This document shows positions 2,310 to 44,478 of a stretch of 64,000 bases of DNA, in pieces (the first letter of the stretch is position 1; each line of letters opens with the position of its first letter). The position numbers and the translations under genes were made by a program. The DNA lies in assembly GCA_010909165.1 (NCBI GenBank), contig VJWM01000011.1, positions 1,054,001 to 1,118,000 on the forward strand. Reading direction: 5' to 3'. The DNA is from Anthoceros angustus (Eukaryota; Plantae; Anthocerotophyta). The notes beneath the pieces are model-generated. The model ran no database searches. It saw nothing but the letters and a program-made list of their open reading frames with translations, and had not been told where the DNA came from.

Positions 2310-5300
2310 TTTTTTTTTTGGGAACCAGACTTTTATAGAAATAAGCCCGAGGAGACCGGAAAGTCTGAGTGGGCAAGAACAATCATGAGACAGGGAGAGG
2401 ATCACCCTGCACAGAGGTGTCTACCTACCAGATGCACAGCCTACCACGCGAATAGAGAGAGCATCCAGACCCTAAGGCAAGCCACGAGCCCACCCCTACA
2501 TCAAGAAAAGTTCAGAGGGAAGCGGGCAGGAGGACGAGTCCTCCTCCAGAGCCAAGTTCATACAACGAAGAAAGAAGGGTTTGACCTTGATCTTCTGGGC
2601 ATGTTCATACAATAAAACTGCCGAGAGGCAGGAAGAGTTGCCATACCGGATTGAGTACCGGTAAGGCATAGGAGAATTGGAGCATGGTACAATAGAGCAG
2701 TACCTGGAACAATGAAAAAACCCTGTACCCGGAAAAGCATAGAGGCCGGGACAAAGATCCTGTCCAGTCTCCTCACAATAAGGTTTTCTTGGAGATTTGT
2801 CCAGCTATAGGACAGCGAGCTGGGTTGCCCGAGGGCAGGGTGAGCCGACCAAGGGTCTTCTAGATTGAGCCATGCATCCCTTAGTTCCACCAGACTGCAA
2901 CACAAGGGGTTCAGAGAACCCCTATTTCACACCTCACTTTCCATTGTTGTAATCCCCTGCCAAAAGCCAGGGGATAGCAAAATCAAGCTTGCCTTTGATC
3001 CATCTCTAGAGGGCAGCCCGCTGAGGGGAGTGAATCGGCGCATAGACATTGCAAATTCCCACCACCCCACAGGGGAGTTGCAGTGTAACCCATTGGCAGG
3101 CCAGTTCTAGGTTAGAACCCGCCCCACAAACCTTGTTCTCTAGAGAGGGATGGATTGTGATAGACAGTCCACCCTTGGTACCATCCGTCGGGACCCAAAA
3201 TGTCTTCCCTAGGATGTAGAGCTTTTTCAGCCCTAGATCCTGAGTTTTACGGGCACGAAGCTTATGCTCTTGCACACAAAACACATTCCACTCCACGTTG
3301 GACTGAAAATAATTACAAAGCGCACAACATTTCGAGTCTCTCTTTGACCACCTAGAAAGCCCATGAACATTCCAGGAGAGAACTTGAAGGTGTTGGCTGC
3401 GCAAATACCTCAGAGGTGTATAATCCTTTAAACCACAGCCTTGGGAGCAACCGCCCCAGCGGTTCTAAGGCTCCTGCAAGCCTTTACCTTAGTAGCAGAA
3501 ATGGACGTGGTGGGTGCAGGGTTGCTATCGATGACTCCCAGAACCTACCATGGCCAGGTGACACCAAAGGCATCACTGCTTTTCCACACCCACTCCAGGC
3601 GTAGGGCGCCATCCGAAGGAGGTTGCGATGGAGTGATTCACGCGAAAATCTTGGGTGATTGAACTAGCTCTTCCTCCAGGCCTTGTATGAAAGTGATGGC
3701 ATCTCTGGGATCCAAGGCCCCTTCCCCAGGTTGCGGATAGCGCAGTGCTGCCTGTGGAGGATGCAAATTGTAACCTTAGAGGCTCCCGCCGAGACACCAT
3801 GGCCTCACCCCGCCTCCCGAGCCTCAGAGACGCAAAGCTCGCAATGAAAGTGGGGTCAAGATCTCCCCATGTGCGAGAGCCGAAGGAAGCGCACACGTCC
3901 GAGTCCATGTCATAATCGCCCTGTTTAGCCAGCCTATTAGTGACAATAGGCACAACCGGGGTGGATGAGGCAGGCAAAATGGAATCCAACCCCTCTATGG
4001 GTGTTGCCAGAGAATCGCCAGAATTGCCGTCCATTACCACTCCGGGTGATGAACTCGTATGGGCGGTAGCATATATGCCATCACCAAGGGTGTACCTGCG
4101 CTTCTTCCCCCGAGCGCCCAGAATGGCCACGGTAGAGTTGTTCTCATTTGCGGCCACAGAGTGGTGTTCATCTGACATCCTCAACATGCCCGCTTAGAAG
4201 GGAATGGTCGACACCCGCCTCTCCTATCCGGGCCGTGAGTTCGTTAGAGGCGAGGAGCAATCATGGAAGGGAGGCGAGGTCAAATGTCCACAATCGCAGC
4301 AGCCAAACTAACATCGGCACCCATTGGCGAAGATGCCAGCTTCGGAGGGGAAGCTAGCATCTTGCAGCGGCCACTAGTTAGCTCAGCTAAGCTAAAGATG
4401 AAACATGGGGTGGAGGCCGGGGCTGGGCTGGTCGGGACAAGGCTGGGGTATCCTTGGGATGTTCGAAAAAGCCGATTTCAAAACCACTAGAGTAAAGGGA
4501 TGGCCGATCGGTGGGGGATTCAGGGGTGGCGATACAGATGAGGGCTTGCGTCACAAGCTGGGCTTAGGGAAGATTGGGTGTGGAAGTAGTGGGGATGGTA
4601 GATATGGCAACATGGTTAGCCTTGGATGGGCAAGAAGGAGTACATAGGATGGCAGATGTGACGGGATGGGAGTCCTGCGGGGAAAGGATGGAGGTCGGGT
4701 TTGGATCAACCCAGTCAACCATGGGTGTGTCAGCAACCGGGGGATAAAGAGCAGCTACGATGGCAGTGAGTTTGAGGGGGGTGGGGAGTGAAGAAGGGGG
4801 GATAGAAGGAATTTGCCTGTTGGAGGACAGGCTAGGGGACGAGCTGTGAGAAGTAGTGGTAATTGGGGCCTCTGGTCAAGTGTCCATCACGTCCTGCGCC
4901 AGAGTGAGAGTGGGGGTGGAAGTGGTTGGGGGAGGAGGTGTAGCCGAGCCGAAGAACTGGAGTTGTTTTTTGGCACCAGGCTTGCTACAGGATGGAGGGT
5001 CTGACGTTGGCTGATGTCTAGATGATTTGTGTTTGGAAGGGCCGGTAGGATTTTTGTTGACTAGGGTTGGGGGCTTCACGGTTGGAGAGGGCAAAGGACC
5101 AGAGTTCAGGACAAGTTTGTGAGCCTTCAGTTTGCTCGGAGGAGAATTTGGGGTACTCTTTAGTTGCTTCGACTTGCAAGGGGACTGCTTTTTTGGGGAC
5201 TGGAGAGAGGATAGGGAGGAAATGGTTGGAGTGGCGTTGGGCAGGGAGGGAATGATCAGAACCACCGGAGGCTTAGAGGACACATCGGGGAGGGGAGGCA

Positions 5301-6050
5301 ACTCAAGACCCATAGCATCTTCACAAGGAAGCACGGTGCTTGCCTTTGCACCATTTAGAACCTTTTTCCAGCGGTTGCTAGAGTTGCCATGCCCTGTGCT
5401 GGCATCTACACAACGCTCCCTCACAGGAGATCCAAAGCCCGTAGCCGGACGTCCCTTGATGTGAACAGAACCTGGAAGAGTAATTTTGGTGGGTTGGAGC
5501 TCCAGCCCAACTACAAGGTCAGAGCCTTGGCGAGAATTCTGGTATTAAAGGTGGCTATGCCCTTTCCCTTTACCACATCTCTGGTAGCTTCTCTGAACAA
5601 GTCTTCACGTACCTACTATTTTTTGGAATGAGGGCCAGAGTCAAAGTCCTCCTCGACCTCGTAGAAGAAGCAAAAGAAGACTGAGGCACAATAGTCCTCA
5701 ATGGTATGCAGCACAGCGAATGCTGGGCTGGAGGTAAACCGGTCCTACTCCCTAGCAACCATGAGTGGCGGGAATTCGGTTGTTAAAATACCATGCAGCT
5801 TTTCCTGAGCATCCTCCCACAGCTTATGAGTGTCTAGTTCTGTGGCAGAGGAGGGCTTGAATAGAGCGCATGGGATGGCGACAAACTTGTCGATGTCCGG
5901 AATCCCAAAGGAAGTGCCCTGCCTGCTTTTCTTCTAGAGGATCAAGCAAACCCGAAGGTCGATATAATCTGCAACTTGTTGCTCAAAAAGTTGAGCACTC
6001 TGTGGACTACGGACTTCCCTGGGGGGTTAGAAATTAGGTAGGGTTTTGTT
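2310..6050 (-). mobile_element. Degenerate L1-clade LINE: ORF1 remnants plus APE endonuclease; RT not recognisable
   Basis: 3404-3006 reads LQVLSWNVHGL...FCVQEHKL...ICNVYAP; 2905-2558 reads LVELRDAWL...LRRLDRIFV...HAPILL. These are APE endonuclease motifs. Broken Pro/Ser/Lys-rich ORF1-like frames lie upstream (3573-5760). A10 tract on the minus strand at 2310-2319. Confidence 0.75.
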
Positions 6051-6063
6051 TTTTTTGTAGGAG

Positions 6064-9000
6064 TAAAGGATAAAATGAGGCGAAAAAGGGGAAATAACCG
6101 TTAGCACTGGACGGCACTGAGTATACTCCGACTGAGTGAACGCACCTAGACCTACGATGGCGCATAAGGTAACGGGTAAGTCCGGACCCACCTGTGACCA
6201 GTGTGATAAGTACGCCAGGAAAGTAACTTAGAAGTTGGGCCGAAGGACTGACCAGGCGACGCCACGTGACGACCCGAGTGGAGGACGGCATGCAGGGTCA
6301 GACCGTGAACCTTGCCGCAGGCCGTTATAGTATTCACGCCTGGCCGCGCGCGAGGGCCGAGCACGCCGCGAAGGCTGCAGTGCACAGAGCCGAGTAAGCC
6401 ATGCACCTGCGCCACTGTGAAGAGGCGCCCCGCCTGGCATTACTCAAGGCGTGGTCGCGAGAAGGTGCTACCGCGCACCGACAATTTCGCGATCCCTTGC
6501 GCCCCGCACCGCTCGCGGTATCTCGGGACACTCGACGCTCGCACGCGCTCACCGCTGAGGTCGGAGAGCAACGCGCCAAGAAGGCGCAACGCCGCTAGCC
6601 TCACAAGCGGCTACAGAACCAAGGAGGAGAAGGCGATGGCACCCAAAAGCCCGGAAGTTTGGGAGCCATGGAACCTTGTGGAGCGCAACATTGTGACCCG
6701 CGCTATCCGGACTTTGGGCTCGCCCAGAAGCGGAGAATTGGTGTGGAGTGGCATTTGGATGTGTTCCATGGTCCGACATTTGACAAGGTCACCGTCCGGA
6801 GTTTGCCCTAAGATGTCAAGCGGTCAATAAGGAGGTGCGGTCCAAGAACCTCCGGAGGACCCAAGGCGATGGACCTTGAGGTCCCGGCGCGGCTACAACC
6901 GCCCCAAGGAGGAAGAGGGGAGGGTGCCGAGCCCTCAAGGCGAAGGGAAGATACCACCACGCTGGCTTAAGGCTCGACGCAACGGACCACCAACGGTTGG
7001 TCGATATCCGACTGACAGCCGAGTCGTGCGGCCGGATCATCGCCCATCGGAACCTACTCACCAAGGTGGATCACCTTGGTGATAATCTATTGGTGTTCCC
7101 GCACGCTACCGCAGGAAGAGGGCGACTGGGAAGGATTATCTTCGGCTTAGCTGTGAGGCTCGCAAGCTCAGACCGAGAAGCCTCGCCATCCCGCCCCATA
7201 CCGATCCATGTATGGGGGCATGGAAGGAAGGAGCTTGAGCGAGCGCCCGGAAGGACCGGAGGCCCCGCCGAGCGGCAAGGGCGCCGAGGGAGGAGGCCGT
7301 CAAAACCAAACGGACTCGGAGGAGGACGATCGAGGATTCCTGACTCCATACGCTGAACGGACCCCTCACCACCTGTGGAAGTATGGAAGCACCCCGCCTC
7401 CTCCTTCCGTGCCCCAACCGTAATACCACCCAGCAGAAGCACCCCAGCAGCCTCCGCCATCACTCCTACCGAGGAGCCCCGACTGTGAGAGAGCCAAGAA
7501 ACGCAAGACCACGGCTTAACGCTACCCCGCCGGCTGAAGATTCTTCCCCGCGACGAGTGGCAAGAAGCGGAGGAAGCGGAGGGCGTAAGGGACGCCGCCT
7601 GTGGAGCAGGAGGACACCGCGGTGATCCAGAGCCGGGGTCCTGCCGATGTGAAGGGGCAAAGGGCGTGCTCCTGACTCCATCACCTCCGCCGAGCCCTGT
7701 GGAGGAAAAGGGCGAGAAGGAGCTCGCCAAAAGGGCCAAGGAGGGGAAGCCCGAGCCAAGACTCGTGACCTAAGGGTCCCGATTGTCCGAGAACCCACCG
7801 ACTTGCTCCGGATCGGTATGGAGGTCCTGACGGAGTGAGATGCCGGCCCCGCCACGGACTTTGTGGGAGCCTCACTGGCCGCCGGAGGAAACACGGCGGT
7901 CCTGCTACCGCCATGGACGGTATGCCTGGGGTCTCAAGGGATGGCCGAGAAGACCTGTGAGGTGGAAGCCACCCGAGGCGCATGGTACTCCTCCGTGAGC
8001 AGCTGAGGGAGCCCAGAGGCGAGAAGGAAGGCCAAGCTCGGCCGGATTGAGGAAGGAAAACGCCGGAGGCGGAGAGGGAGGTCCGTCCATCCGCAAGGAC
8101 CGACAAATTCCTTCACCGGAGGAACAAACAAGGTGCCAAGGAGGCCCAAGCGCGGCGGAGGACCTCGCAGTGAGGGGCGAGCGCAGCAGAAGCGAGGACG
8201 CCCGGCGCGAACGGGCGCGGATCTCGCGGAGGCCTGACCGACCAGAGCCAAGCCGAGAGGCTCAGTGAAGGTGGCCAAGGAGGCGGAGGCCACGGGGCCG
8301 ATCGCGATCACTATCGGCGTGATCGAACCGTGGAGGAGGCGGCCGAGAGAGCCACGGCCAAGGCCGAGCAAGTGGTCATGGAGCAGCACGAGGGAGGCAT
8401 CGAGGCCAAGACCCGGGAGATTGGGGACCCTGTGGTGCACCGCAGGAGGTAGAAGGGCGGCAGGAGCCGGAGGACAACAAGGACACCTTGGAGTTGCAAC
8501 CCAAGATGCACGGAAAGCAGGGGTTCTCAACGAGAGAATCCAAGACTTCGAGCGAGAGGTAGAACGCCCAGCCCGCTTGAAGACGGAGGAGAATAGGCGG
8601 CGGCAAGGAGTTCGACGCAAGGTTGCAGCAGGATGTGGCGAAGCCGTGAGCCTGACGGGATACCCGCCTGGAGAAGGAAGTGGAGGACCTCCGGAAAGAA
8701 TAGACGAAGGGAAGAAAGCATCGAGGAAAAGGCTACAGCTCGTCCGGCCAGGGAAGGAGGAGCTCACCCATGGCCCGAAATCAAGTGAGCCAACAACGAC
8801 GGAGGAGGAGAACGCCGAGCAGCAAGGTTGCAAGAGGTAATCTGAGGCAGCCTTGACGGCCTCAAGGGAGTCCGCCCATACCGTAAGCTTGGCCACGGAG
8901 AGCGCCAGGCCGGGCGATCCGCCTGCCACGAGCACCTCCGAGGAGGGAGTACCGGTGCCCGGCTCATGTAGAGGAGGCGATTCAAGTCGATTCCGACCGC

Positions 9001-28955: not shown

Positions 28956-31862
28956 TCAGCGCATGAATCCTACAGCAGTCAATCCTTAAGAAAAGTGTTT
29001 GAACCAAAATCGCGTGAGAATGTTGGTCTTACCGCCTTAGCAATGGTCGAGGATTGTATGGGAAAAGTTGCCTCTGCAGAAGGCGTTCTATTGATGATTT
29101 TAGCTGAGCAAGACAAGCCCCTGCCCTATGCACCGACATTGAGCTGGGGTCTTTCATGGAGGGGACCCCCAAATGGGACTGGTAATAGCCATCAGCCAAC
29201 TGAGGAACCGTACTCAGAAACAAAGGCCATGTCTCCTCAATGAGACGAAGGCATCTACAATGCCACCACATGCCATTAGCTGCGACCGTCTGCAGCATGA
29301 ATACAAGTGCTGCAAAAGGAAGGAACTTACCGCATCAGGTACTGTAGACACAGAGGGCCTGTTTGTTTCGATATCAGAAAGTCAACAATGACGGAGTGAT
29401 CGTATTGCATCTGAAACCAGCATGAGTTCAGTCAAAGTAAGTGAAGTGCTTCCATGTCGATAACTTGTACAGAGAGGTGCAAAGCATCACTGAGATGGTA
29501 CCAAAGCAAGGAAGGCATGGCATAGACGAAGAGGTGCTATGGCTGTGACTGGGTCAGCTGGTGAAGCAGAAGTCGCACTTGGGGATGTTCTGCAATTAAA
29601 ACGACCAACACACACTCAGAGTTGCAACTTCTCTCTGGTACACAACACAACAATGGATGATGCACCCTTGAAACTTACAGTTTCTTTTGTGTCAGCACAG
29701 GCGCAAGGTTTGAAAGCTGAAGCAGCATATCAAGCAGTAGATCATCCTGAAAGCCTTGAGACAGAATAGGGTGAGTGAGAGAGAGTCTTGTCCCTCCGCA
29801 AACCGAGCCACCTGAAAAGGAATGTTATACCTCATCCAAGAACAGCTGCACAAGCGATACTGTGACTCGGTTCACAGCTGAAGCCATGTCATGGGAATCC
29901 ACTGCACAGGTGTCTATGATTTCTTGCAGCTTGGCTTGAAGCCAGAATACCAGATGCTCCTCAACTTGATTGACAGAAGTTTGCTTGTGTTGATGAAGCA
30001 ATCCTTCCTTGGATGTTTCAGAGAGAGGTATTTCCACATTACCTTTCAATGAGGTGAGTATCTTGAAGTAGAGGAGCAAGACCCGTCTTTGCAAGTGTCG
30101 GAAGGAGTGGGTCTGACTAGGTAACCTTGAGTAGAACGGCGATGAGACACAGGATTGGGTATCTAAAGGATCATTCTGTAAGAGGGAGGCATGGAATAGA
30201 TCTTCCGCATTTGAGCGGAGAGCATCCATACATGTCACAGAAAATGATTGATCAATTGAGAACGCTCCAGAGAGTCTCATCAAGATAGTCTGCAAATGAC
30301 TCAAGAAATGAGGTCAGCACGCGAGAGAATACAACAGCTCAGAAAGTCGAGGACAGAAGAAATCTTTAACGAATACCAGTAGCTTATATCGCAGTAGGTG
30401 GGAATGATGCTTGTGAGCGGGCAAAGCCAGATCCGAGAGGTCAGGAATCAGCAATTGTACATGCTTTAGGCAGGCATAATTTGTTGTCAGCGGTTGGCAT
30501 TGCTGTGGATCCAAGCAACGCACACAAGAAGAAAGCAACTGCAACCAGGATGCTAGAAGCAGCTCCTTGACTTCAATTTGTCGTATGTCACTACAGTGGC
30601 CTCCTAAGCACTTTGAAAAAATAGCGACAAAGCTTTGACCACCAGGTGATCCTCCATTTGGACAAATACACCCTGTGAGAACACCTTCTCCCCCCATCAC
30701 ATGAACACACCCCACCTTTGCAATCTGAGAGAGGAAAACCCTAAGAAAACTATGAGCACATTCTTCCTCTTCCATTGCATTCTTCAAGATGCACCTTAAA
30801 AGTTCTAGTGCGCAGGTCACCGCAGGCCAGAAGACAAATGCATCCGTCTCTTCTGCAGCCGATCCAAGGGAGTCCGTCAATCGAGCCCTCTTCCTGCATC
30901 GACCATCGTGCAACTCATCTTCTGGGCAGTGGCAGGCATTAGGATATACATTGCCAGCGCTCCAGCACGCTGACCCTGACAACCAGGTCCTGGAAGCACG
31001 CCATAGACATTCTAATAAAGATGTCCAGGCGGATACCTGCAAAACGGACGAGGATACAAATACCAGAGGTGTCAATCCTTAGCAGTGTATGTCACATGTC
31101 ACCAACTGCAGACCATGTTTCGCATTTTCTGGCAAGAGTTGTCTCAAGTACTCACAGAAACCTGTAGACAGTTTGCAAAAACTAGAAGAACTCTTTTTGC
31201 AGAATGACGGACATGTCTGTCGTCTGAAGTAAATAATAGAAGCTGCCAACAGCAGGGAGTCATTACAAATCTCAACTAGGCACAACGTCATCCAAACATC
31301 TGATTACTACGATGCTCACCAGGCTGCTGACACTAGATTCATAAATCGAGTATCTTGTACAATGCCAATTGGGACTCCCCAAAGAGTTACGAATTGCCTT
31401 GTCGGCCTACACCGCAGTTGTGCCGATTCACAGTCTGTAAACACTGCGGATTGTGGTGTATCTGATAAAACAAATACAAAGTTGAACTTGACACCCTAGC
31501 TGGCTATCATATCACCTTGGCAAGCAAACAGCAGACATGATCTAGGGTCCTCGATGCTTTCCCCTGCAAATACATCAAGGAAAACGTATGTCAATCTGTA
31601 TTATCTGACGGAGAGCATCTACCTTAGGTCTGTTGCTGAAGATTTCGAACCAAACAATGAGAGACTGGTGACCTCACTCACAAGCGAAGTCGCTGATAGT
31701 GCCTCCAATGTAGCCAGTACCTGTATACAACACCGGTAAGCACAACAGATAAATGAAATGAAAGAGGTCGAGGGTCATCAGCTCCACCGCACCTCTGCAA
31801 CGCTGTGATCGACGTACATGCTGAACAAGATTTTCACTCCGCACGAGTTGTGATGCGGACAT
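28956..31862 (-). CDS. LINS: Protein Lines homolog (Lines_C domain), multi-exon
   Basis: Spliced C-terminus IAPLRLCHAFLAL|MQYDHSVIVDFLISKQTGPLCLQYLMR|CLRLIEETW...LAQLKSSIERLLQRQLFPYNPRPLLRR|LTAVGFMR* matches the Lines_C pattern (YDHS.LLDFLIS.ET..CL.Y; FPYN..PLLRRL). Helical upstream exons at 29825-31075. The 5' exon structure is uncertain. Confidence 0.8.
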
Positions 31863-31947: not shown

Positions 31948-33345
31948 ATGCTGCGGTCTTCTGTACGCGCGGTGGGTCGGTGTGCACATGCTTGCAGATG
32001 GACAACGGCGTGGGGTCAGGAAGCGGATTGCGATGCATCTGCTTTCTTTGTGAGAATCTCACTGCTTCAGGATTTGGGTGTTGTTTTGAGAAAAGCGGGT
32101 TGAAGCAGCTGATGCCTGATTGCGTGTGGCACCAGAAAGCAGGATGCAGGGCTTTGACTGCCAGGGCGGCATCCAGTGAACAGGAGTCCAATGCTGCTGC
32201 AGTGAAACCGCTGGGTGGGAGAACGGAGAAAATTGTGGCCGCTGTGGTTTTGGAGAGACTTCCTGTTGTGCTGCCACAGCTCCCAAAGCCTGTTGCGGAT
32301 TTTCAGAGCTATTCGTAAGTTGTGATGCAGAAACTTTCAGTCGGCCAATGAGTTGGCAGTTGTGGCATTCGTTTGCATGGCACTGTCTTAAAGTTTGATG
32401 GCCCTGCTCATTGTGGTGTTAAGATTCGCTTGGAGACAGCAGTATCGAAGAGCCTACCCTGAAGAATTCCTCAAGGCCTCCTCTAGCAAGTGAGTACAGT
32501 CCGGTTGTGGTCACATTGGTACTTCCTGCATACTCAAGCGTAACGAGAGTTCCTGCTTGGTGTGTCTGCTCAAGGCAGGGAAGATGATGGGGGAGAGATG
32601 CTATACGAGCCAGCTGCAACAGTCACCGAAGCTGACACAAAGGACAATCGGAGGTATAGGGTTAGCTCTGTCTTCTTCTCAGCACTTCCTGGCTGGGCAG
32701 TCATGCTGCTACCCTGCTACAGCTCTTTGGCTTGGATGCAGGTCGTTGATCAGGGCATTAGACCGTAGGCTGTACCTTATACTGCACGGCTTTCCGTTCG
32801 GGAGCTCCAGGGATAAGCCTGTTTGGCACTTCCCCGAAAAACAGTATGCAGACGAGGAGACCCTGCGCCTGGTATGGGCAGCATTCCAGGCATTTACTGA
32901 CCCTTCGCTGTGGCATACAGGATCTCTTGCATATTGAAGGTGCTGTTTGCAGTGTGCAGAATCTGCTGTGACATCCTTTGTAGAGGATCCAGACAACGAC
33001 CTGTACTTTGTGGGCAATGCCCCAGTGGGCCATATCGAACAGCATTGTCTCCAGCCTGGTGCCCCAATGCCAGTCTTCAAGGTGGGGATTGCAAGGATTT
33101 TCGTGCTCGAGTTTGAACGTCAGTAGCAGTGGCCATTATTGTTACAATTCAGAGTCTTTTGGGCTGGCTTGACATTCAGTTGCTTTGCACAGAGGTTCTT
33201 CTTCAAATCCCAGCTCATTGGCAACAAAGTGAACCTGACTGTAGGCAAACACAAAGATTTTGCCTGGGTTTCGAAGGAAGAACTCATTGAGTATTTAGAG
33301 GAACCTCTGGACAAGGACTTGATGAAGAAACTTTTACTTGATTGA
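31948..33345 (+). CDS. MRPL46: Mitochondrial ribosomal protein mL46 (DECOY-like), multi-exon
   Basis: EKIVAAVVLERLPVV; FAWRQQYRRAYPEEFL; SLIRALDRRLYLIL...WHFPEKQYADEETLR; YFVGNAPVGH; RFFFKSQLI...KDFAWVSKEELIEYL. The start (MLRSSVRA|) is inferred. Confidence 0.88.
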
Positions 33346-33718
33346 CACCACAACGAGATGCGCATTGCAATAGCTGACGGTCGACTTCGCGTCAATGGTG
33401 ATCGGAAAGCCACTTTGCCAGACGGTTCTGCTGACAGAACTGCTGTGGGTATGGAGGTATTTGTAAGTCAAGGTTGCACGAGCTGTTGCGAGTTAACTGC
33501 ATTTGGAGGCTACATACGATGCATCTGTAAGCTCTGGAAACACAGCTTTGTGGACATGTCTCACAAGGAAGCTGCTTTTCATGTGCTGCAGGCACATTCA
33601 GAGTGCCAACCTGTTATCCCTTTACCAATTGCTCCCGGACCCCGGTTGCTCCTGCACGAAGTCCGCAGGCAAAAGAGGAGTGTCTAAAAATATCTGCATA
33701 GTGATACAATGAACTTTA

Positions 33719-34040
33719 TCAATGCTCCATGTCCAGGAGGTCTGCATCGTCTGTGTAGCTTGCACAACTGTTTCCAAGTTCTACGTATGTTGCAAGTATT
33801 GACTTTGTCACGCTGTCATCTGCTATGTGGAGAGAGTCCTTTAAATGAAGAGGTATAATTCCGTGGGCATCGTCTTCCTTCCACCTTCTTTGAGTATGTA
33901 TGTTTAGCTCTGCGGCAATCATGCATGCACTCTGTGTAAAATCTTATCTCACTCCACAGCTCAGCATCGTCATGTTCAGAGTACTGGTATGTGTCTACTT
34001 GTATTGTAATATCTTCAACTCTCCTGCTCCTGGAGCCAAC
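33719..34040 (-). CDS. Possible spliced ORF of unknown function (3' exons only)
   Basis: Acceptor TTATAG| AVGSRSRRVEDITIQVDTYQYSEHDDAELW |GTGAG...GCAG| joins in frame to KLNIHTQRRWKEDDAHGIIPLHL...DLLDMEH*. No family recognised. Confidence 0.3.
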
Positions 34041-34149
34041 TGCCTATAAGAATTTGCCGGCATGAGCATCAGATCAGGCCTCTCTCCTGTCCCTTCTCTC
34101 GGAGAGTATGCCTCGCTCAGAAACTGGTAGCATTCCCTTCTCTGCAGAG

Positions 34150-36058
34150 ATGGGTCAGCTGAGGAAGTGCTTGACCATCTCAGCGTCGGTTCTTTTACTT
34201 GTGTTGGTTGCAGTCTCTGCAACGGATGCCACTACGGACAATGTCATTACCCAGTGGAACGCTCTGGCCCAGGAGGTGTCTGCTTCCCCCTGACATAGGA
34301 GATAAACGTTCCTGCCGCAGGATCCACATGAAGCTATGGTACTGAACTGGATTTGGTGCTGCTGTGTGAAGGTCTCCCGCCGGCTTGGCATCCCCAACCA
34401 AATTTCAGCTAGAAATTACGCTCTGGTGCACCTCTCCCAGTACAAAGCTCTGCAATTGGCTTTCAAGAAGGGTGTGAAACACCCGGAGGCTGCTGCAGCC
34501 TTCGCTGCCCACTTCATCCTCACTCAGTAAGCCTGCACACTGAGGAACACAAGCCTGCCCTTGCAATTCCTACTGTTGCAGAATTGCAGCCGACGTGCTC
34601 TGAACTGTTTGCTTCATCTCACGTTGCAGAGTGAGCCCCACACTGCAGTCATCACGACTGGACGGTTTCCTGGCCAAGCAGATCCTTCCTCTGCAGCTCT
34701 CCAAGAAGGAGGATGCTGAGCTCCGAAAGATTGCCCTATCCTTCGCCGTCCCTCTCATCAGAGAAAGGTAACCGCCAACTCGTCTTTCTCATCTTGCTGC
34801 AGTCACGGTGTGTGCAATCTGCTCATCAGCTGTCTCCATTTCCAGGGCTTTTGATGGAAGCCAGATTTGGGCGGAATTCCAGCCTGCTCCTCCAGGGAGC
34901 CCGGCAGGAGAGTACCAGTTCACTCCCAACCAGACCTTCGCTCTGTACCCGCAGCTGGCAAAGACCAAGCCCTTCGTGATCAAGTCTCCCAAGCTCTACG
35001 ACCACAACGGTGGCCCACCCAAGGTCCCCAGCGCTGCCTACAATGAGCAGTACGACATCACAGTGCAAGTGGGAGACGCAAGCTCGCCGTCTCAAACTCT
35101 GGCTGAGAAGGAGACGGCACGATTCTGGGAAGACGGTGCCAGTGAGAAATCAGACCGGGCCACTTGCTTTCTTGCTTGCTTGCTTCCATTTCTCTGCTTC
35201 CGGCAAGCTAACGATCATGTCCCGACATGCCTGCAGATACCTCGGCAGTTTCAGGGCAACTGTTCAACATCACCCTTGCAGCAGTTGGGTCTGAGCTCTC
35301 GCTGAAGGAGACAGCCAAGCTCTTTGCAGCATATGCTGTAGCCAGCTACGATGCCTCCATAGCCACCTGGTATCAGAAGTACAAGTACCTCTTCTGGAGG
35401 CCCATCACTGCTGTCAGGTAACAGGGCTGCAACCAACCGTGTGCATGCCGTGCATTTTGGACACTCCAGGGACAGGGAGCATCTGAACGTCAGGGTCTGT
35501 TTGAATTCTCGTCCCGTCCAACAGGCAAGGAGACTCGGTACACAAGCCCAGACCCAGCTTCACCACGGTCTTGAGCACTCCTCCTCACCCGGAGTACCCA
35601 AGTGGGCACAGCTCTGTTGCGGGAAGCTACGTCTCGGTGGTGTCCAAGTTCCTAGGCAAACAACCCAGCAGCAAAACCGATGCTCCCTTCCTTGTTGCCA
35701 CTGAGTCCTACTTTCTGCCTCCCCGCACATTCGAAACCATCGATGGGCCGGCCAAGGACATTCTGATCAGCAGGTGGACATCCTCTCGCTGTTCAAGTTC
35801 TAGCTCCTGATTGCAGCCCGCCTGGCTGGTGCCTGACAAACTGCGTTGTATGTTCAGAGTTTATGCAGGGGTTCATTTTCACAAGTCCAGCGATGATGGT
35901 TACAAGATCGGACTGGAGGTTTGTTTGTCGTATAAATCCATCCATCTCCGTCTCTCGTCATACCAATTGATTGTAGTGGTTTTGACATGCTGTGGTTCTG
36001 GCAGGTTGGCCAATATGTGTGGAAACACTTCGAGAAAGTCTTTGGTGACCTTGACTGA
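34150..36058 (+). CDS. Secreted vanadium-dependent haloperoxidase-like protein (PAP2/haloperoxidase superfamily), 8 exons, 419 aa
   Basis: Exons 34150-34275, 34372-34526, 34630-34767, 34846-35141, 35237-35417, 35525-35773, 35858-35918 and 36005-36058; all GT-AG, total 1260 nt in frame. Signal peptide; KYKYLFWRP, PHPEYPSGHS and SRVYAGVHF motifs. Confidence 0.9.
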
Positions 36059-38612
36059 AGCCCAACTCTGTCAGCTTTATCCCCCAAACTCAAAAGAAGC
36101 ATCGAGGATTTGTAGCACTATGAGAACTGGATGCGTGACAAGCTTCCCCAGTGTGAGGCACCATCCACTTCCGTTACAACGTGGAGGGCTGAGTCTCACC
36201 GCCGCATTTTGTGGATTGATTGACTTTAATTTTTAAATTTTATATGTAATAGGTAGCCTAATTCAACCTTCACTTAAATCGTACGACTTATAGCGTTATG
36301 TATATACATACACGGCAGGCCAACGTGGCGAACAAGGATCTTGTATTCAATGAATTGGTCCTAAGGCCCTTAAAATTAGCTAATTAGTTAATTTGATGTA
36401 AGAGCGAGGTACAATTCAATTCATATTATAATTATTAATATCTTGATGTTGATATTTTATTATTTTTACTAATATAATTCAAACATATAAAATTTAAAAT
36501 TTATGTGTTCAATGATGATGATAATCGGGTTTTAAAAGCATCAATAATTTTTTTCCATTATGACGGTGCCCTAACATGCCTTCTGATGATCACGATGGTA
36601 CCCTAACCTGACCACATCTATGGTTGGTATTATGCTAGGCTAAAATGCGTTGCACTATCTCACTCTATTTGTATTCTGTACTATTCCATTCCAATAACAC
36701 TCTCCAAAGCATATAAGATCAATGCAATATATTATTCTCACTCTTATAGCATTTCACGAAGCGGGAACGACCGATGTGCCATACTAGTTTTATTCTTCAT
36801 ATGCTAATATTTTGCCATACTAGTTTTATTCTTCATCTGCTAATATTTTGCCAAACGAATAGCGCCTATGCGGTACTATCCCCACTCTATTGGCAAAATT
36901 TCTGACTATCAATGTCGGGTTCTGTATTGGCATTGTGCCTGACTATCAATGTCAGATTCTCTATTAGCATTGGGCGAGACTGCCAATGCCAAATTATCCA
37001 TTGTCATTGTGTATGTGCCAAATTGCTCGTATCGAGTTTTCTCCTGGCATTGTGCCAAATTATCCATGCTGAGTTCTCGAGGGCCGGAAAACCATTGACA
37101 GAGTGCAAGACTGCCCTGCCGAGTTCTTCAACCGGATCTTCTCTTCCTAATCCCACTAGGACCTTTCAAAGTCAACATGCACGCTAGTGATATATACAGA
37201 ACAGGACAAAAACCAGAACCAATTGAGCTTTTATGTCCAAAAATAAAAGCTTGAGCTTTCATGTTTTTGAATAAGTTACTGAACTTAAAAACTATTATGA
37301 CACAATGCTTTCTTAATTTTTTTAAGAATCCAAAAAATGTATACTTCAAACTTGGTATTGGCGATTGGTATTGGCGATTATTTGCCGCACTCAGTGTTGC
37401 TAAATATTCGCCAACACTAAGTTTGGTTTCGTGCTTCACCCTTTTAAAATGTGGCTTCTTTTAATTTCATGCTTTTTTTTCCTCAGCACGGATCTCCTCC
37501 TTCTAGACCTCTTAAACTCAGTGTATCTACGCCTCGCAAGCTTTAAAAATTAGGCGAACTTCTCCATCGTCATGTGGGAAACAGAGTAAGGTCCTATCGA
37601 AGACGTCGAATGAGTTATTTTCACTTGATTCTTAAATGTTTCAAGTGCACCCGCACTGTAAAGTGAAAAATGGCAAACACAATATTTTATTTTCATCCCA
37701 CCTGGATCTTTCCAACTCAGCACACACGCTCGCACTTTACAATGAACAATGCAAAAAATTAGTCGCTTTATTTGAGGTACTTATCTTTTTTTTTCTGATC
37801 CTAATTTGAGTACTTCCAAGACCATGGATAAAATCCTTTTCATCCTTGTCCGCATGAAGGAACGTAAATTTGTTTCCATCGAGTAAATTTGCCAAAAAAA
37901 TCTATTTTCACCGTCATTAATCAATCTTCCCTTCAATTGGATAGATCCTAGGCCTATCTTACGAGATAGAGAGCATCTTCGAAACATGTATGAGTTTCTG
38001 CAAACAAAGTTACTTTGAGACTTGAATCCTCCGTATTATCTCGGTCGAAGAAGATGAGATTGTACTTGCATGATTTTGCTGAGAATTCCGGTTATACTTT
38101 TATGTTGAAAATGTAATTCCAACAATGAAGAACATACCGAACAAAATTAAGACGTTAGAATTCAGCTGTAATGTGCAAAGTACTTAGAATAGCTCCTACA
38201 AGAAAAGTTAGTTTGTAGACACATACTTATTAATTAAATATGATTTATGAATATTTACTAATAAATAAATATAAAAATTTTAATAGTCATAATGAATTAT
38301 AAATAAAAGAAGAAGAAGTCTATTATGATCCTCCTTTCCAGGAGTGACATCCATACACGAGTTCATTAGAACTCCACAGTTAAGCGATAAGTGCTTGGAT
38401 GGGGTGTTGCCCATCTTCCACGTTCATAGCCCTATGGGGCCACTTATTATAAACCTCATGCCTCTGTCTCGCAGTGGTTGTTAATTCCTACGAGGTTACT
38501 CCATATCAAATTCTAAAGTGGGACTACAATGTATACTTTGAAATTCTATAAAGTCTCCAAATTTACTAAAAAAGAAGTCTATTATAATCTACTTAGAAGG
38601 AATTTTCTCTCA

Positions 38613-42524: not shown

Positions 42525-44478
42525 ATGGCGGCTGCGCAGCGTGTTGCAGGGGTGCCGGGCTCGGGAGGCGGGTGCGCTGCGGCCCCGGCCTCCCGCAGCC
42601 AGTGGAGGCAAGGCGAGCAGGAGGTGAGCTTCTGCCTCCTCAAACGGGCAGGGTCGGGATCGCCGTGGGCTCGCCGAGGCCGTGTGATTGCGGCGGCGCC
42701 GCCGGAAGGGGGGGCCGGGCCGGCTCAGGTGGTGCACCCGCTGGAGAAGGCGGCGCTGGCGGCGGCGGCGGCGCTGAGGGCGCATGAAAACGATCCAGAG
42801 GCGGAGGCGGAGAAGCACTGGCAGGCCCCGGAGGAGGTGATTGGGAGCGAGGCCAAGCTCCTGGTGCACACTTATGCCCGCGCCCCCGTGGTGCTGGTGA
42901 GCGGCAAGGGATGCAGTGTTTATGACGCGAATGGGAAGGAGTACCTGGACCTCGCGGCAGGCATCGCTGTGAACTCCCTTGGCCACAGCGACCCCGCCTG
43001 GGTGAAGGCTGTGGCGGATCAAGCCGCCCTGCTGGCGCACACCAGCAACCTCTACCACACCGTACCACAGGTTTTCTTCTCCCTCACCTTCCTCGCTCCT
43101 TCCTCCAATTGCATTGCATGTTTCTCCTGAGACCTTGCTTTTGTTTCCTCCTTCTGTTGCCCTGCAACTCATGAGACCTTGTTTTAGTTTCCTTCTCCCT
43201 TCCATTCGTTGTCCCTTCCTCCGGTGGCATTGCATCTCATGACACCTTGCTTTTGTTTCCTTCTCCCTCCCATTCGTTGTCCCTTCCTCCCATTGCATTG
43301 CATCTCATAAGACCTTCCTTTTGTTTTTTTTTCTCCCTCACCTTCCTTGCTCCTTCCTCCGATTGCATTGCATGCATCTCATGAGTGAGCCCTTGCTTGT
43401 CGCCTGGCATATGACAGGTGAAGCTGGCGAAGAGGCTGGTGGAAGCCTCCTTTGCCGACCGCGTCTTCTTCTCCAATTCCGGGACAGAAGCCAACGAAGC
43501 CGCCATCAAGTTCGCCAGGAAGTTCCAGCGCGTGAAGGCGCAGGAGCGGGAGGATACCCGCTGGCTCAAGTTGCCCTTCGGGCAGGCGAGCCCGGCCACG
43601 GGCTTCGTGGCGTATTCCGGAGGCTTCCACGGCCGGACGCTGGGGGCGCTGGCCCTGACCAGCAAGGCGCAGTATCGAGCCCCATTCGAGCCCATCATGC
43701 CGGGGGTGACCTTCATCGAGTTCGGGGACCTGGAGGCGACCCGGAAGGCGGTGCGGGGGGGCTCCATTGCGGGCGTGTTCGTGGAGCCGGTGCAGGGGGA
43801 GGGTGGCGTCCTCCCCGCCGTCGCCACCTTCCTCCGCGGGCTCCGGAAGCTGTGTGACGACGAGGGAGTGCTGCTGATCTTCGATGAGGTAAGCTCGCCA
43901 TCTTCCTTCTTCTTTCTCCTTTTCTCTGTTCTGAACTGGCTTGATACCTGCAGGTGCAATGCGGGTTGGGGAGGACAGGCCGGCTGTGGGCGCACGAATC
44001 CTACGGCGTGCAGCCGGACATTATGACGCTGGCGAAGCCCCTGGCAGGTGGGCTGCCCATCGGCGCGGTTCTGATGACGGAGGCGGTGGCGGCAGCTATC
44101 CAGCCCGGGGACCACGGCAGCACCTTCGCGGGGGGGCCTCTGGTGTGCACTGCTGCGCTGGCGGTGATGGACAGGCTGCAGGAGCCGGGCTTCCTGGAGG
44201 CGGTGGCCAGCAAGGGCCACATGCTCAAGACCAGGCTCCAGGAGGTGGTCGGGGGCAACAGGCACGTGAAGGAGGTGCGGGGGACGGGGCTGCTGGTTGG
44301 GCTGCAGCTGGACGTGCCGGCGGGTCCTCTCGTGGATGCGGCGCGGGAGCAGGGCCTGCTAGTGATCACTGCGGGTAAGGGGGATGTGGTGCGGATGGCC
44401 CCGCCGCTCACCATTTCGGAGCTGGAGTTGGAGAAGGCGGTTTCCATTCTAGCCAAATGCTTGCCTTCCCTCGGTTGA
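42525..44478 (+). CDS. argD: Acetylornithine aminotransferase (class III PLP enzyme), organellar, 3 exons
   Basis: Exons 42525-43070, 43418-43888 and 43954-44478. Motifs [55 protein letters not shown]|[35 protein letters not shown]. Transit-peptide-like N-terminus. Confidence 0.96.

Follow-up and report, generated by a model that had tools for sequence, protein, structure and literature searches.

Characterised vanadium haloperoxidases (VHPOs) come from seaweeds, fungi and bacteria. An intron-containing gene of VHPO type at positions 34150-36058 of the window (the whole stretch of 64,000 nucleotides of Anthoceros angustus DNA that was analysed, to which all positions refer unless stated otherwise) raises the question of whether a land plant encodes a working, secreted enzyme of this kind, and of how the gene reached a hornwort. 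The evidence set out below leaves little doubt about the VHPO family identity of the protein and the green-lineage ancestry of the gene, both of which are regarded as nearly certain, and bears with graded strength on the chemistry that the protein may perform.

Gene structure, transcription and genomic context

The gene lies on the forward strand at 34150-36058 in eight exons, bordered by AG before and GT after, which sum to 1260 nt (419 codons and a TGA stop) and are separated by introns of 78-107 nt; the GC content of the coding sequence is 55%, against 50% for the window. Exon 1 (34150..34275, 42 codons) begins with a start codon at 34150 that has A at -3 and G at +4, and contains a putative signal peptide (aa 1-24, 34150-34221) with cleavage probably after V-S-A; the joint 34275/34372 is present in transcript contigs. 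The predicted first helical bundle is encoded by exons 2 (34372..34526, 155 nt) and 3 (34630..34767, 138 nt), both transcript-supported. The length of exon 2 is equal in a second hornwort-like locus (L002), Physcomitrium and Diphasiastrum, and is 164 nt in Riccia with the intron positions unchanged. Exon 4 (34846..35141, 296 nt), likewise supported by transcripts, covers a linker region with conserved PxQT..YPQL and ..FW.. elements.

All three vanadate-site motifs named in an earlier note on this DNA were recovered in the exons that follow. KYKYLFWRP starts at aa 286 (35377-35403, K286..R293-P294) within exon 5 (35237..35417, 181 nt), which also encodes W283, and PEYPSGHS starts at aa 321 (35589-35612, P-E-Y-P-S325-G326-H327-S) within exon 6 (35525..35773, 249 nt), which also encodes H320, five residues ahead of S325. 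The third motif, SRVYAGVHF, starts at aa 381 and is interrupted by intron 6, with S381 and two bases of R382 at 35769-35773 in exon 6 and the remainder (R382..H388) at 35858-35879 in exon 7 (35858..35918, 61 nt); H388 is the presumed ligand for vanadate or phosphate. Exon 8 (36005..36058) supplies 17 codons and the TGA, and the C-terminus ..FGDLD is similar to the FGDL end of moss and liverwort orthologues.

A public transcript contig of 3201 nt from run X1 had no differences to the window and skipped all seven introns at the modelled borders, in agreement with the exon borders, length and splicing of the intact 419-aa, eight-exon gene that the earlier note had described. The contig is taken as a spliced transcript from its intron-less form at the seven GT..AG sites, the library type of the runs being presumed. 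The same splice joints were observed in contigs from three related organisms (90-99% alike). The 3' untranslated region (36059..36300, forward strand) is covered by one X1 transcript contig to at least 36300 (X1 record 1, 36003-36300), and a transcribed leader (34000..34149, forward strand) by an X1 contig. Within the leader there is a 22-codon upstream ORF at 34062-34130 and an in-frame ATG at 34108, 14 codons ahead of the modelled start. The X1 contig extends approximately 1.5 kb upstream of 34000, and this region represents either a long 5' untranslated region with upstream ORFs or an assembly fused to a neighbouring transcript.

In the hydropathy profile of the joined protein, the sole strongly hydrophobic stretch is at aa 7-25 and is followed by V-S-A. 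This pattern fits the signal peptide proposed in the earlier note, suggesting a protein destined for secretion, with the vacuole as an alternative destination. There are three N-X-S/T sequons, and the mature part contains no Cys.

No second copy of the gene was found within the 64-kb window, and no biosynthetic gene cluster adjoins it. The nearest recognisable neighbour, approximately 6 kb downstream, is a class III aminotransferase gene with several GC-rich exons (42846-44478, forward strand), three ORF pieces of which match Aminotran_3 (Pfam) at 7e-50, 2e-39 and 4e-14. Two long ORFs of 159 and 253 aa on the reverse strand at 29825-31075 resemble exons of another gene and have no Pfam match, nor do the ORFs at 32557-32937 and 33358-33687. 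The second hornwort-like locus, L002, is a Logan contig of SRR33208241 that contains the same eight-exon gene at its positions 5139-7375, encoding a protein 75% identical to that of the window and flanked by two long intron-poor PPR genes; this gene is either another species' orthologue or a paralogue.

Family assignment and predicted fold

The window was searched exon by exon, and the exons were joined only for motif and length counts, BLAST against fetched proteins, alignments and trees. Full-length Pfam, PDB-sequence, word-index and Atlas searches and structure prediction were conducted with a surrogate in place of the window's own protein, namely P0167, a transcript-derived protein from a close relative that is 75% identical to the window model, aligns gap-free over aa 22-418 and spans all exon junctions.

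At the level of single exons, the best PDB match of exon 6 was the Zobellia iodoperoxidase 4CIT (E 1.5e-4), and all of its PDB matches were VHPO-family chains except for one chance-level row (E 0.71). Exon 5 matched the Curvularia chloroperoxidase (VCPO) at 6e-5 over residues 323-364, placing W283, K286 and R293 on W350, K353 and R360, and exon 6, which carries the S-G-H residues, aligned with Curvularia residues 390-436, so that the motif mapping onto this enzyme given in the earlier note was reproduced. There was no PDB match for exon 4 alone. Single-exon Pfam searches gave only sub-threshold PAP2 and VCPO_2nd matches on exon 6, and a DIM match on the signal peptide was dismissed as chance.

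Searched against PDB sequences, P0167 matched 4CIT at 5e-21, followed by NapH3, the Curvularia VCPO and NapH1, with no acid phosphatases at E 0.01. It exceeded the Pfam gathering thresholds of VCPO_2nd (36.9 bits, with 27 required) and PAP2, and the ESM Atlas look-up returned bacterial VHPO-family clusters only; no NCBIfam model matched P0167 or the Physcomitrium and Coccomyxa proteins. An AlphaFold2 model of P0167, built with 60 homologues, had a mean pLDDT of 95 and a pTM of 0.92, and Foldseek aligned it over its full length with the Zobellia iodoperoxidase (4USZ/4CIT) at TM 0.75-0.76, then with XhnO11, NapH3, NapH1 and CiVCPO, the full-length matches including 3W36 and 1VNC. Class A acid phosphatases covered a third to half of the model, at a TMq of approximately 0.35. 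Identity was 16-24% to any tested haloperoxidase and 22-24% to the nearest characterised enzyme. The PDB matches, Pfam scores and fold agree on the bacterial-type architecture claimed in the earlier note, and the protein is, as judged from sequence comparison and the surrogate model, a bacterial-type member of the VHPO family with two predicted helical bundles, within the PAP2 superfamily.

Active-site residues and selective constraint

In the alignment, the window protein keeps D277, W283, K286, R293, P294, H320, S325, G326, H327, R382 and H388. Across the 29 green sequences, K286, R293 and P294 are invariant, and H327, R382 and H388 are each conserved in 28. One of the two Sphagnum jensenii copies, P0101, is substituted at the His equivalents of H320 (Asn), H327 (Asp) and H388 (Asn), and this paralogue is likely to be inactive. 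Position 326, beside the catalytic His, is Gly in the hornwort, the lycophyte, Klebsormidium, the chlorophyceans and nearly all bacteria, and Thr in most mosses, liverworts and several trebouxiophytes, a distribution that suggests a substitution that is either recurrent or ancient. The residue at H320 is His in most relatives and Phe in the Zobellia enzyme; the Curvularia enzyme has Phe397 at this site and algal bromoperoxidases have His.

The anion-binding residues are common to VHPOs and PAP2 acid phosphatases and therefore cannot decide the activity. The position four residues past the ligand His offers some discrimination, as the PAP2 phosphatase motif is SRX5HX3D, with Asp at the site of Ser392. 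This site is Ser or Ala in 28 of the 29 green members and Gly in Botryococcus, is Ser, Ala or Gly in most bacterial-type relatives too, and is also without Asp in the aligned Zobellia iodoperoxidase and NapH3. The missing Asp, the two-bundle fold and the nearest sequence matches jointly tilt the reading towards a vanadate enzyme, without proving it.

The gene is under purifying selection, with a dN/dS of 0.11 against the L002 gene. Among the differences listed for close relatives, 22 were synonymous and six nonsynonymous, and three of these six were located at the signal-peptide cleavage region.

Distribution and ancestry in the green lineage

An exhaustive protein search with exon 4 as the query returned 91 cluster representatives at E <= 0.001 out of 1.84 billion. 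Through cluster look-ups and word searches, relatives were identified in mosses (Physcomitrium XP_024360198.1, LOC112274722; Sphagnum; Ceratodon), liverworts (Riccia; Marchantia polymorpha MPTK1_2g09150, i.e. Mp2g09150; M. paleacea), the lycophyte Diphasiastrum complanatum (O6H91_13G102500), the streptophyte alga Klebsormidium nitens (KFL_000220060), trebouxiophytes (Coccomyxa, with C-169 XP_005645038.1; Myrmecia; Chlorella ohadii; Botryococcus) and chlorophyceans (Monoraphidium, Scenedesmus, Raphidocelis). In public annotation, the plant orthologues bear the names 'PAP2/haloperoxidase domain-containing' or 'uncharacterized' protein. Identity of the window protein is 53-64% with the other land-plant proteins and approximately 30% with bacterial proteins, and the nearest non-green relatives are mostly from soil bacteria (Acidobacteriota, Verrucomicrobiota, Streptomyces and Acetobacteraceae, at 24-33% identity). 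Seven metagenomic proteins of 2900-4500 aa (P0043, P0054, P0055, P0065, P0073, P0077 and P0090) each contain one VHPO-like domain, approximately 32% identical to the plant protein, and form their own clade.

The exon structures of seven orthologues were mapped on their genomic loci and compared with the window for both intron position and phase. All seven window introns are matched in L002, Physcomitrium, Riccia and Diphasiastrum, five of the seven in Klebsormidium and in Coccomyxa C-169, and three of the seven in Chlorella ohadii. The phylogeny across bacteria, algae and plants that the earlier note had called for gave a single green clade (100/100) in a maximum-likelihood tree of 49 rows, none of them brown-algal, with the embryophytes nested in it (100/100), Klebsormidium and one further transcript as their sister and the chlorophytes outside, i.e. 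in the order of the species tree. Quick trees concurred, the green clade being monophyletic with a long stem. Support for a bacterial sister group differed between trees, at 36 in a quick tree and 88/87 for a metagenomic pair in the maximum-likelihood tree. The window gene falls among the embryophytes in the tree and shares their intron pattern.

These patterns indicate an old nuclear gene of green plants, apparently inherited vertically through chlorophytes, Klebsormidium, bryophytes and a lycophyte. The earlier note had left its origin between horizontal acquisition and retention from algal ancestors; the intron positions shared as far as the chlorophytes and a green clade that mirrors the species tree favour retention, and acquisition by this plant or by land plants in particular finds no support. 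A more ancient bacterial transfer into the green-plant ancestor, before chlorophytes and streptophytes diverged, would be compatible with the data without being demonstrated by them.

There were no fern or seed-plant names in any search list. The first two word-index searches missed orthologues, in the lycophyte, Marchantia, Klebsormidium and the chlorophyceans, that were found by a third, so that a missing name in such a list counts for little. With this reservation, the gene would seem to have been lost either before the euphyllophytes arose or within that group.

No study of a green-lineage VHPO family, and no enzymology or vanadium measurement for any of its members, was found in the searched literature on haloperoxidases of hornworts, bryophytes, Physcomitrium, Coccomyxa and Viridiplantae, which accords with the statement in the earlier note that no embryophyte VHPO has been characterised. 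Of the suggestion that orthologues might prove both ubiquitous and already characterised, the first half was borne out, with annotated genes in mosses, liverworts, a lycophyte and many green algae, and the second was not. An unspecified 'haloperoxidase', which may or may not belong to this family, is present among the plant candidates in a survey of horizontal gene transfer (PMC9667741).

Proposed function and alternative explanations

Under the proposed function, removal of the signal peptide would leave a protein that is delivered to the apoplast or cell wall, with the vacuole as a further possible destination. Orthovanadate would be bound through His388, with Lys286, Arg293, Ser325-Gly326-His327 and Arg382 holding the oxyanion, and H2O2 would be used to oxidise iodide or bromide, and less likely chloride, to hypohalous acid. 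This acid might function in detoxifying H2O2, in defence against microbes or in cross-linking phenolics of the wall, along the lines proposed for brown algae; a role in mucilage or symbiont cavities is speculation. The full explanation, of a functional, secreted, monomeric and vertically inherited VHPO acting by this mechanism, is considered evenly balanced between true and false, and the halide-oxidising mechanism itself, as read from conserved residues, is placed at or slightly short of that balance. The broader proposal, that a true extracellular VHPO has been kept by non-seed land plants and green algae since before the chlorophyte-streptophyte split and lost toward the seed plants, is put forward tentatively, its chances being somewhat below even. 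Several considerations count against a haloperoxidase: some solved members of the fold family do not halogenate (NapH3, from its PDB title), identity to the closest characterised enzyme is only 22-24%, many moss, liverwort and algal orthologues carry Thr at position 326, and little bromide or iodide is available in freshwater and soil.

In a secreted acid phosphatase, engaged in phosphate scavenging or in the turnover of phosphoesters in the wall or apoplast, the roles of nucleophile and general acid would fall to His388 and His327, respectively, with no vanadate in vivo. Membership of the PAP2 superfamily and the K-X6-RP, PSGH and SR-X5-H elements, which are PAP2 phosphatase motifs, would suit this function, but the Asp of the SRX5HX3D motif is replaced by Ser or Ala (Gly in Botryococcus) in all green members. 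Similarly, relatives are annotated as 'acid phosphatase/vanadium-dependent haloperoxidase' or 'phospholipid phosphatase', and the PDB title of 3BB0, among the fold matches, records dephosphorylation by an apo-chloroperoxidase, whereas no acid phosphatase was retrieved by sequence at E 0.01 and the predicted fold is the two-bundle VHPO type, of which acid phosphatases cover at most half. The length of 419 aa in two bundles also differs from the single-bundle class A proteins of approximately 200-250 aa. On land, phosphate is a likelier substrate than halide, but plants already secrete purple acid phosphatases. On balance a phosphatase is thought unlikely, though it has a real share of the probability. 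A smaller share goes to a protein that has the VHPO fold and performs other chemistry, whether as a non-halogenating vanadate or phosphate enzyme (an isomerase like NapH3, or a peroxidase on organic substrates) or as an oxyanion-binding protein. NapH3, a rearrangement-catalysing VHPO homologue, ranks high in both the sequence and the fold comparisons, and identity to any tested haloperoxidase is low (16-24%); however, the strong constraint on ten tabulated residues across the whole green lineage would fit catalysis at an oxyanion site, and the gene has no biosynthetic gene cluster beside it. Other chemistry of this kind is therefore rated improbable.

With respect to origin, a gene recently acquired by this plant from soil bacteria through horizontal transfer, or an assembly contaminated with bacterial DNA, would account for nearest non-green relatives in soil bacteria (24-33% identity) and for an architecture of bacterial type. 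Neither is easily reconciled with seven spliceosomal introns that are all removed in transcripts, with intron positions common to a moss, a liverwort, a lycophyte, Klebsormidium and chlorophytes, with a monophyletic green clade on a long stem, or with identities of 53-64% to land plants compared with approximately 30% to bacteria, and the downstream neighbour, an ordinary plant aminotransferase gene with introns, counts against contamination. Such a recent bacterial source is accordingly given almost no credence. Readings of the locus as contamination or as a pseudogene were rejected on the introns, splicing, intact frame and dN/dS.

The preferred reading is a vertically inherited VHPO. The gene is transcribed, its product is predicted to be secreted, and it has been conserved in each of the three bryophyte lineages, in a lycophyte and in green algae, whereas the searches returned no orthologue from seed plants. 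It is thus a candidate for a cell-surface chemistry that was ancestral to green plants and later lost, possibly involving defence by reactive halogens, the removal of H2O2, cross-linking of the wall or the emission of organohalogens from mosses and peat. If the protein is a true haloperoxidase, surface chemistry with halides and H2O2 would be an ancestral green-plant trait and this would be the first embryophyte VHPO; if it is a phosphatase only, the finding is an ordinary one. The presence of orthologues in transformable models, Marchantia (Mp2g09150) and Physcomitrium (LOC112274722), makes the proposal directly testable.

Comparison with known systems

The closest characterised counterpart is the iodoperoxidase of Zobellia galactanivorans (4CIT/4USZ), which shares a monomer size of approximately 410-460 aa and two helical bundles, with TM 0.75-0.76 both ways, and in which the K..RP, SGH and R..H residues align residue for residue and the Asp four past the ligand His is likewise missing. 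The two differ in that identity is only 22-24%, the plant has His320 in place of the Zobellia Phe, and the plant gene is eukaryotic, with seven introns and a putative eukaryotic signal peptide. The Curvularia inaequalis chloroperoxidase (1VNC, 1IDQ) has the same fold (TMq 0.69-0.75), but the fungal enzyme is longer, at 609 aa with additional insertions, and is 16-19% identical. The class A acid phosphatases (Escherichia blattae 1D2T; PhoC) share the PAP2 superfamily, the oxyanion-binding motifs and a superposable second bundle, but consist of approximately 210-230 aa in one bundle (TMq approximately 0.35).

Bacterial-type VHPOs are already known in bacteria and brown algae, and the plant orthologues are publicly annotated but unstudied. 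In brown algae, bacterial-type vHPOs form a third vHPO class that was acquired early in the Phaeophyceae (bioRxiv 10.1101/2024.02.19.579948). The green lineage resembles this case in being a eukaryotic lineage with a bacterial-type, rather than algal-type, VHPO, and differs from it in that the green-lineage genes are their own clade, in a tree without brown-algal sequences. Within land plants, the window protein is 53-64% identical to orthologues such as those of Physcomitrium, Marchantia and Diphasiastrum, the intron positions of the Physcomitrium, Diphasiastrum and Riccia genes are identical to its own, and it is distinguished from most moss and liverwort orthologues by Gly326, where these have Thr.
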